A stretch of 64,000 bases of DNA, from the IMG/VR virus record IMGVR_UViG_3300042350_004528, positions 234,834 to 298,833 of that record. One strand, written 5' to 3'. The position numbers and the translations under genes are program-made. The first letter of the stretch is position 1. Every line of letters begins with the position of its first letter. A model generated the notes under the pieces. The model was not told where the DNA came from. It saw only the letters and a list, made by a program, of their open reading frames with translations, and did no database searches. Below are positions 30,800 through 45,235 of the stretch, piece after piece.

Positions 30800-30808
30800 A
30801 TATAAAAC

Positions 30809-30837
30809 AAAAAACCCAGGTGGTTTACCTGGGTTTT
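30809..30837 (-). terminator. Intrinsic terminator of attenuator B
   Basis: AAAACCCAGGT-AAACC-ACCTGGGTTTT + U tract; AACCCAG is complementary to CTGGGTT in leader B (30885-30891). Confidence 0.85.
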
Positions 30838-30862
30838 CTTTTCTAACTCTATGTTCTTTAGT

Positions 30863-30949
30863 TTAACATAAATTAGGCAATACTAACCCAGCCCAGTTTT
30901 TCACCGAGATATGTTTAATTGACTTAATAATGTTAACCATTGTGTTCAT
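30863..30949 (-). CDS. Leader peptide B (28 aa) MNTMVNIIKSIKHISVKNWAGLVLPNLC
   Basis: Codons 5-17 dominated by Val/Ile/Lys/Ser(TCN)/His, matching downstream tRNAs. Confidence 0.75.
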   Translation of the reverse strand: MNTMVNIIKSIKHISVKNWAGLVLPNLC

Positions 30950-31022
30950 TTTACTGATTTTTAAATATATAGTGCAAAAGTAAGCAAAGTTTTTTAAATA
31001 TGCAAGTTTTTTCAAAAAAAAA

Positions 31023-31415
31023 TTAAAAAATTTCTCTTTTACCTCTAGATACTGGCTCCAAACCTTTATTTCTGTCAATATAGATCCAGTCATATTCAAC
31101 CAAACCGAACTCATTGAGATGGTCTAATACGGTCTCAATACTATATTCTTTACATGAATAAATGTCAAATTGAACCAAACTTGGTGTATTTGCATCCCAA
31201 ATATGAATCGCAGCATGTGAGGTTGCAAGGGTTATTGTCCCAGTAATACCCTCATTACCTGGCTCGTCAACATAAATGGACGTTGGGCCAGCAACGACAA
31301 CCATACCAACTTTATTTACCAACGAGGTTAACCATGCGTCTAAAACCTCTTCCTTCTTTGGTGGATTTAAAACGTATCCACGGACGATTAAATGCAAGTG
31401 ATTTGGATTGAACAT
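31023..31415 (-). CDS. speD: S-adenosylmethionine decarboxylase proenzyme-like
   Basis: HLHLI, GITG...LATSHAAIHIW, DIYSC. Confidence 0.8.
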   Translation of the reverse strand: MFNPNHLHLIVRGYVLNPPKKEEVLDAWLTSLVNKVGMVVVAGPTSIYVDEPGNEGITGTITLATSHAAIHIWDANTPSLVQFDIYSCKEYSIETVLDHLNEFGLVEYDWIYIDRNKGLEPVSRGKREIF

Positions 31416-38701: not shown

Positions 38702-38776
38702 GCGACAATAGTAATAAAAAATGTGGATAAAACAAATAAAAAAAGGGTAAAATATTTTACCCTTTTTAAATTTCTG

Positions 38777-39152
38777 TGGAGTCGGAGGGATTCGAACCCT
38801 CGTCTCGTTTAGCCATTCAATAATTCTCATTCACATGCTTAGTTCATTTTTCTAAACAAACAAAATATTTGTCTTCACTAACCCAGAAGTTCAATAAAAC
38901 TGGAATACCTTTTTTGGAGTTCCCACCTCCCACCTGGCATCTAAGGGTTTTTGCAGTTTTAACTGACAGTTGTTGGCTTACGCCAATTCGTAGTCTGCAA
39001 ACTCAACTGGCTGACCGTTCAACACGATGTTGCCTTCAGCGTCAATGTAGCTTTCGCCATCTGAAATTGTGTATAGGTTATTTAAGTGTTTCCGATACTA
39101 ACACCACATGCAAATTAAAGAACGAATCTACCGATCGATTCCAGTCGACCCC
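38777..39152 (-). ncRNA. ssrA: tmRNA; tag ORF 39058-38978 = GESYIDAEGNIVLNGQPVEFADYELA*
   Basis: 5' GGGGTCGACTGGAATCGA; 3' T-arm GAGGGTTCGAATCCCTC + CGACTCCA with G3:U70. Confidence 0.92.
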
Positions 39153-45098: not shown

Positions 45099-45116
45099 AA
45101 TAAGTAAATAAAACAC

Positions 45117-45235
45117 AGGATGCGTTTATACGTGCTCTAACCAACTGAGCTATCGACCTCATACGAAGCCGAGTGGGACTCGAACCCACGACCCCGAGGT
45201 TGACATCCTAAAGTTTAATTTGCGGAATGCATCCT
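45117..45235 (-). ncRNA. Circularly permuted tRNA-like RNA (YrlA/Y-RNA-like)
   Basis: AGGATGC/GCATCCT terminal stem + TTCCGCAAA; T-arm precedes D-arm; acceptor stem closed by a GTAT loop. Confidence 0.75.

Follow-up and report, generated by a model that had tools for sequence, protein, structure and literature searches.

Leader-peptide attenuation is a classical mechanism, known from the amino-acid operons (trpL, hisL, leuL, thrL, ilvL, pheL; Rfam leader families such as RF00506), where a promoter-proximal short ORF with a run of regulatory codons is followed by alternative 1:2, 2:3 and 3:4 RNA structures and an intrinsic terminator upstream of the regulated genes, and where efficient translation gives termination. 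There is evidence for such attenuation upstream of amino-acid biosynthesis operons in flavobacteria (PMC9723704). T-box riboswitches also sense tRNA status and control read-through of a terminator upstream of translation-related genes, but they bind uncharged tRNA directly through one specifier codon and need no ribosome. Large clustered sets of tRNA genes are known from phages (T4, T5, mycobacteriophages, huge phages), and it has been proposed that these replace host tRNAs that become limiting or are destroyed during infection, for instance by tRNA-targeting defences (PMC10264068, PMC11464382). Here we describe a 28-codon ORF and a terminator located just upstream of tRNA genes in what looks like a jumbo phage, in which the codons of the putative leader are those read by the downstream tRNAs. 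In contrast to the amino-acid operons, the regulated genes would be tRNAs plus a Thg1-like enzyme instead of biosynthetic enzymes, the regulatory run is a mixture of five amino acids, one for each downstream tRNA, rather than a repeat of one, and the element is phage-borne. Full-text literature searches, which did not cover all journals so that a prior description cannot be excluded, gave no report of codon-matched leader-peptide control upstream of tRNA genes or phage tRNA arrays.

Anatomy of the unit upstream of tRNA-Lys

The window analysed here comprises 64,000 nucleotides (positions 234,834 to 298,833 of IMG/VR record IMGVR_UViG_3300042350_004528) and forms the last 64 kb of a single 298,833-bp contig with 34% G+C, which is found in lake-water metagenomes. 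All 27 tRNAs called by ARAGORN lie in this window on the minus strand, together with a tmRNA. The unit under study, unit B, consists of the following features, all on the minus strand.

31005-30975, minus strand: promoter, with the -33 TTG at 31005-31003 and the -7 box TACTTTTG at 30982-30975.
30949-30863, minus strand: leader ORF of 28 codons (MNTMVNIIKSIKHISVKNWAGLVLPNLC) plus a stop codon at 30865-30863.
30937-30899, minus strand: sensor codons 5-17 (V N I I K S I K H I S V K), which would form the 5' strand of the 1:2 hairpin.
30891-30885, minus strand: antiterminator 5' strand CTGGGTT (codons 20-22), with an adjacent alternative register, CTGGGC, at 30896-30891.
30876-30843, minus strand: inner hairpin of the antiterminator, formed by 30876-30865 pairing with 30855-30843 and spanning the stop codon.
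30839-30809, minus strand: predicted intrinsic terminator with a 13-bp stem (5 G-C), a 5-nt loop and a U6 tract, with a hairpin free energy of about -18 kcal/mol.
30799-30562, minus strand: tRNA-Lys(UUU) 30799-30725, tRNA-Val(UAC) 30719-30645 and tRNA-Ile(GAU) 30638-30562 (68-76 bits).
30552-30522, minus strand: internal promoter directly upstream of tRNA-Ser, a full match to TTG-N20-TATATTTG.
30512-29052, minus strand: tRNA-Ser(UGA) 30512-30427, ORF144 30413-29979, a Thg1-like gene 29982-29140 and tRNA-His(GUG) 29128-29052.

The promoter of unit B matches TTG-N20-TAnnTTTG, a Bacteroidota-type motif carried by about 70 near-identical promoters in this genome. Outside the window, at 186000-217000 of the contig, and at the contig ends, these promoters (TTGCAnnTTAAATTTATT...TTATCTTTG) drive small genes on both strands, probably as an early-gene region, and the first and last 100 bp or so of the contig repeat the same promoter, which suggests terminal redundancy or circular permutation. 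In flavobacteria the sigma-A -7 box sits at -12 to -5, and the median 5' UTR in Flavobacterium psychrophilum, which has no Shine-Dalgarno sequence, is 24 nt (PMC9723704). By this rule transcription would start near 30970, giving an inferred 5' UTR of 21 nt. The initial annotation, which had proposed an attenuator with a Val/Ile/Lys/Ser/His leader extending its control to Thg1 and tRNA-His, correctly described the codons, the 7-bp leader/terminator complementarity and the separate promoter element near tRNA-Ser, and its interpretation is supported. Only 9 nt separate the U-tract from tRNA-Lys, so no promoter can sit downstream of the terminator, and the Lys, Val and Ile tRNAs can only be reached by read-through. 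The U-tract 'TTTTTTG' could in principle double as a -7 box, but there is no -33 TTG at the right distance.

No terminator is predicted on the minus strand between 30809 and 28751. ORF144 follows tRNA-Ser by 13 nt and overlaps the start of the Thg1-like gene (PF04446, 93.1 bits against a cut-off of 29.2, E = 1.7e-26; 145 viral relatives), and tRNA-His follows the latter by 11 nt. Therefore, read-through transcripts should reach tRNA-His, although Ser, Thg1 and His also have an independent input from the 30552 promoter and their dependence on the attenuator may be small. AdoMet_dc transcripts can also run into the terminator of unit B. The phage tRNA-His gene already encodes G at position -1, and the adjacent Thg1-like enzyme may therefore work in tRNA 5'-end repair rather than in G-1 addition. 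Just downstream of tRNA-His, at about 29030-28986 (minus), lies a tandem direct repeat of about 22 nt (TTTGTATCACATGACCGATATA, two copies) that resembles the -7 region of the promoter of a sister unit, unit C, and may be a relic of promoter duplication.

Codon match between leaders and tRNA arrays

Unit B is one of four units in the window with the same layout of a promoter, a 25-32-codon ORF, a stop codon 24-34 nt before a terminator, and a tRNA array. The three sister units are as follows.

46521-46338, minus strand: unit A, with a promoter-like site at about 46521-46494, leader 46469-46392 and terminator 46368-46338, upstream of Phe, Thr, Asn, Asp, Arg(UCU), Glu, Met, Met, Gly, Gly, Ile(UAU).
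40401-40263, minus strand: unit D, with leader 40401-40321 (rich in Arg, Leu and Gln codons) and a terminator at about 40295-40263, preceding Arg(ACG), Leu(UAG), Leu(UAA) and Gln(UUG).
28954-28721, minus strand: unit C, with promoter 28954-28924, leader 28884-28786 and terminator 28751-28721, preceding Tyr, Pro, Pro, Ser(GCU)-like, Ala(UGC)-like, Trp, Cys.

Leader codons that the downstream tRNAs can read were counted using strict wobble rules, with the genome's own codon usage as background. The matches were 17/24 for unit A (p = 4e-3), 12/27 for unit B (p = 2e-3, with 5.1 expected), 13/31 for unit C (p = 9e-5) and 10/25 for unit D (p = 1e-4), with a combined p of 4e-10, while every off-diagonal pairing of a leader with another unit's array was non-significant. 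In unit B, eleven of the matching codons are contiguous (codons 7-17), and the +1 and +2 frames give only 2/27 and 4/27; these shifted frames were non-significant in all nine units tested for this. Within codons 2-19 of leader B, upstream of the antiterminator strand, the count is 11/18 (p = 9e-5) against 1/9 from codon 20 to the end, although it should be noted that the boundary of this zone was chosen after seeing the data, which was not the case for the whole-leader p-values. Furthermore, leader B carries Asn codons (AAC x3, AAT) without a tRNA-Asn in the array, and GTT (codon 5) needs extended U34 wobble to be read.

The match holds at isoacceptor level. Leader A uses ATA and AGA, alongside tRNA-Ile(UAU) and tRNA-Arg(UCU), and both GGA and GGC, leader B uses ATT and ATC alongside tRNA-Ile(GAU), and leader D uses CGC alongside tRNA-Arg(ACG). 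Leader C contains four Ala codons and one AGT that no annotated tRNA explained, and inspection of the 170-nt gap in array C then revealed two genes that ARAGORN had missed: a tRNA-Ser(GCU)-like gene with a long variable arm at 28452-28366 (minus) and a tRNA-Ala(UGC)-like gene at 28362-28294 (minus). The latter scores 25.8 bits in Rfam, below the cut-off of 29, and its acceptor stem pairs fully, with G3:U70, only if one 3'-strand base is bulged; both are conserved, with compensatory changes, in L129, one of the related phage loci that we compared (denoted L, with further phage records denoted G). With these, codons 11-23 of leader C all correspond to a tRNA in the array by amino acid, of which 11 of 13 are read under strict wobble, because GCT needs extended U34 reading.

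Two further consensus promoters (46325 and 46225) lie between terminator A and tRNA-Phe, so that array A may not depend only on its attenuator. This region (46325-45862, minus) also holds a tRNA-like element of about 100 nt (about 46100-46002, with a GGTTCGAATCC T-arm) and a hairpin RNA of about 135 nt closed by a long stem at about 45998-45866, none of which has an Rfam match, whereas a Y RNA-like (YrlA) match of 45.9 bits, below the cut-off of 69, lies inside array A at 45099-45221 (minus). Between the 40565 promoter and leader D, a structured RNA of about 95 nt ending in a U-run (40532-40434, minus), of unknown function and highly conserved in L130, may be transcribed together with leader D. 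The phage-borne tmRNA (38774-39152, minus; Rfam 78.8 bits), which ARAGORN did not call in the window, lies just downstream of array D and a further tRNA-Leu, and has a homologue in L130.

Related phages with rearranged arrays have correspondingly changed leaders. L129 and L136 (ORF144 81% and 78% identical) carry the array Lys, Ile(UAU), Ile(GAU), ORF144, His, Val, and their leader keeps the V/I/K/S/H codon set in a different order and gains ATA codons. Array C of L129 has tRNA-Ser(UGA) and only one tRNA-Pro, and its leader has three UCN codons and fewer Pro codons. In L132 (94% nucleotide identity), leader B differs by three synonymous changes (TCA>TCG, CAT>CAC, TTA>TTG) and M4I, while leader C is identical over all 99 nt. 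The start codon, the ORF length (27-28 codons) and the stop-to-terminator distance (24-26 nt) are conserved in L131/L132/L129/L136. The single His codon is retained (CAT or CAC) in all four B-family versions and, like the L129/L136 arrangement, in which His and Val follow ORF144 directly without Thg1 in between, supports common control of tRNA-His. The B family, however, has only four sequences from two lineages. In L136, a tRNA with anticodon CUA, a likely amber suppressor also carried by L094 and L174 (G004), lies directly upstream of unit B.

More distant phages carry the same device with other codon sets. L061, L066 and L073 have an S/I/H/T leader upstream of Ser, His, Thr and Ile tRNAs, and G003 has two leaders, one for Ser/Gln/Pro/His/Arg (p = 2e-5) and one for 13 other species (p = 1e-4), for which swapping gives p of about 1. 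G002, L093 and L100 have 'one-of-each' leaders upstream of 13-21 tRNAs (18 in L093, 21 in G002). For eight non-redundant units, the true leader-array assignment is the single best of 40,320 permutations. A recurring motif, GTTCTTTGA(C/A)ATATTGG-like, lies between the attenuator terminator and the first tRNA, and also between tRNAs, in several relatives (L093, L100, L073, L170; about 46262 in the window), and could be a processing site or a promoter element.

Not all relatives carry such units. Of 80 loci collected through Thg1, most have no tRNAs nearby; L013, L045 and L054 have arrays but no leader unit, and the apparent unit of L041 is just the C-terminus of a protein followed by a terminator. 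In the closest Thg1 relatives (L001-L007) ARAGORN calls no standard tRNA nearby, L004-L006 having only one call of undetermined type. G004 (50 tRNAs), G001 and G005 showed no such units either. A megablast of 4.6 kb around the site against GenBank phages gave no match, and a search of IMG/VR for the exact pattern of terminator end plus tRNA-Lys start returned only the L129 contig.

Predicted RNA structures

When folded without the terminator's 3' arm, every one of the nine units forms an outer helix between leader codons about 18-25 and the terminator's 5' arm, enclosing an inner hairpin that spans the stop codon. In unit B, CUGGGUU pairs with AACCCAG at 30835-30829, and together with the nested hairpin this yields -18.1 kcal/mol. 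The motif AAGAACATA is invariant in the B family, and the sixth pair of the antiterminator helix runs C-G (L129, L136), U.G (L132), U-A (window). The 7-bp complementarity of B is matched or beaten by 1-2% of shuffled ORFs. Against such shuffled ORFs, z-scores are -4.7 to -5.7 for A, -5.1 to -5.7 for C, -2.7 to -2.9 for B and -1.7 for D, compared to -1.0 to +2.2 for seven control pairs of small ORF plus terminator elsewhere in the genome. Unit B has one of the two weakest antiterminators, with 7 bp at -11.7 kcal/mol against a terminator of -18 kcal/mol. Moreover, its outer strand ends 18 nt before the stop codon, at the edge of a ribosome footprint, so that a terminating ribosome would not cover it directly, while in the other units the strand ends 0-9 nt from the stop or overlaps it, and in unit D it ends 15 nt before it.

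Before segment 3 is transcribed, the ORF can fold back on itself into a 1:2 hairpin, in which codons 4-16 of leader B pair with codons 18-31. The layout is the same in L129, with a different apical helix (CUCGGU:ACUGGG in the window against UCGUGA:UCACGA), and this pairing would also explain why the non-cognate GTTAAC (Val-Asn) is conserved. However, the fold of leader B in the window is no more stable than that of shuffled sequences (z = -1.05, against z = -3.5 for L129), and a register difference of 1-3 nt between the two lineages prevented a column-wise covariation count. Equilibrium folding with a masked ribosome always kept the terminator, because equilibrium energies cannot model a kinetic switch. 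Rfam gave no hit over 30800-31010 even at E <= 1, neither to a T-box nor to an amino-acid leader family, and only unit A gave a sub-threshold Thr_leader hit (26 bits against a cut-off of 55).

In DNA sequencing runs, unit B was invariant in the two runs X18 and X19, while unit C had one terminator variant that was not compensated. RNA runs mostly contained conserved tRNA words from other organisms, and the contigs gave no coverage of the leader. The only sign of transcription found for this phage is an identical 224-nt contig from a riverine metatranscriptome (31079-31302), which lies inside the AdoMet decarboxylase-like gene and not in the leader, and for which DNA carry-over is not excluded.

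A putative attenuator sensing tRNA supply

In the absence of expression data, these findings make it most likely that unit B is a ribosome-mediated transcription attenuator that senses decoding capacity and autoregulates a phage tRNA array, and we hold this view with fairly good, but not full, confidence. In this model, in which translation of the leader, ribosome stalling and conditional read-through are inferred, if aminoacyl-tRNAs for Ile, Lys, Ser, His and Val are plentiful, the ribosome would run to the stop codon, melt the hairpin spanning it and occupy segment 2, upon which the 13-bp terminator forms and transcription ends about 160 nt in. If any of these tRNAs is limiting, the ribosome would stall within codons 7-15 and open the 1:2 hairpin, leaving CUGGGUU and the stop-region hairpin free to pair with the terminator's 5' arm and the spacer upstream of it, so that RNA polymerase reads on into tRNA-Lys, Val and Ile, and should continue into Ser, ORF144, Thg1 and tRNA-His. 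Since the products are the tRNAs that relieve the stall, this would be a negative feedback loop, for which shortage of tRNA species, rather than of amino acids, is inferred to be the most sensible natural signal.

We must however take into account that a ribosome cannot tell a missing tRNA from an uncharged one, and that the same hardware could respond to amino-acid starvation, overall translation capacity or the stage of infection, acting as a timer or stress switch. The 'one-of-each' leaders of L093 and G002 do look like general sensors, and without translation the 1:2 and 3:4 structures would default to termination. Conversely, the leaders are partitioned by array down to isoacceptor level (ATA against ATT/ATC, AGA against CGC, UCN against AGY), which a general sensor would not need, and as making more tRNA does not cure amino-acid starvation, the regulated genes would fit a tRNA-supply signal better. 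We therefore regard a general signal as unlikely.

Even less likely is that the terminator is an ordinary end of the AdoMet_dc gene or of a small-ORF transcript, with the tRNAs made by constitutive leak-through, the small ORF an unrelated or untranslated micro-gene, and the codon match a coincidence in an AT-rich genome where Ile, Lys and Asn are common. Ile, Lys, Val and Ser are indeed common here (background 0.19), the B antiterminator is short, and the arrangement of promoter, small ORF and terminator occurs 8 times elsewhere in the genome with no tRNAs downstream. Yet the match is computed against the genome's own codon usage, is frame-specific, and recurs in all four units and in at least five other phage lineages with different amino-acid sets, and the control small ORFs lack complementarity to their terminators. 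The peptide sequence is not conserved while the codon set is, and a consensus promoter about 160 nt upstream of a strong terminator, with tRNAs 9 nt beyond it, makes little sense as a plain gene end. Antitermination by a phage or host protein, or by an RNA (N/Q-like, or T-box-like binding of uncharged tRNA), appears equally improbable. Jumbo phages encode many unknown proteins, and structured RNAs of unknown function lie next to units A and D, but the signal is confined to one reading frame bounded by a conserved ATG and stop codon, and a T-box reads a single specifier codon, not a run of 11 mixed codons.

A more far-reaching possibility, which we put forward only tentatively, is that these leaders form a previously undescribed regulatory class of codon-matched sensors that let giant phages keep their tRNA arrays silent until particular host tRNAs run out, whether through host shut-off, codon demand or anticodon-nuclease defences such as PARIS, PrrC, Septu or Schlafen-like systems. 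Only the array that replaces the missing species would then be induced, which would amount to an inducible, self-limiting counter-defence, modular by array and widespread in jumbo phages of Bacteroidota.

Why phages carry tRNAs has been debated for more than 50 years, with codon compensation, host tRNA decay and evasion of tRNA-cleaving defences all proposed, while the regulation of these tRNAs is almost unknown. A leader whose codons list the tRNAs encoded just downstream would give a direct readout of what the phage is sensing, namely a shortage of those particular decoders, and makes the question testable with simple reporters. It also offers a way to find cryptic tRNAs, as leader C did for two that the tRNA finder missed. 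As such, it would extend leader-peptide attenuation from amino-acid metabolism to the tRNA pool itself, and would provide natural, modular sensors for individual tRNA species.
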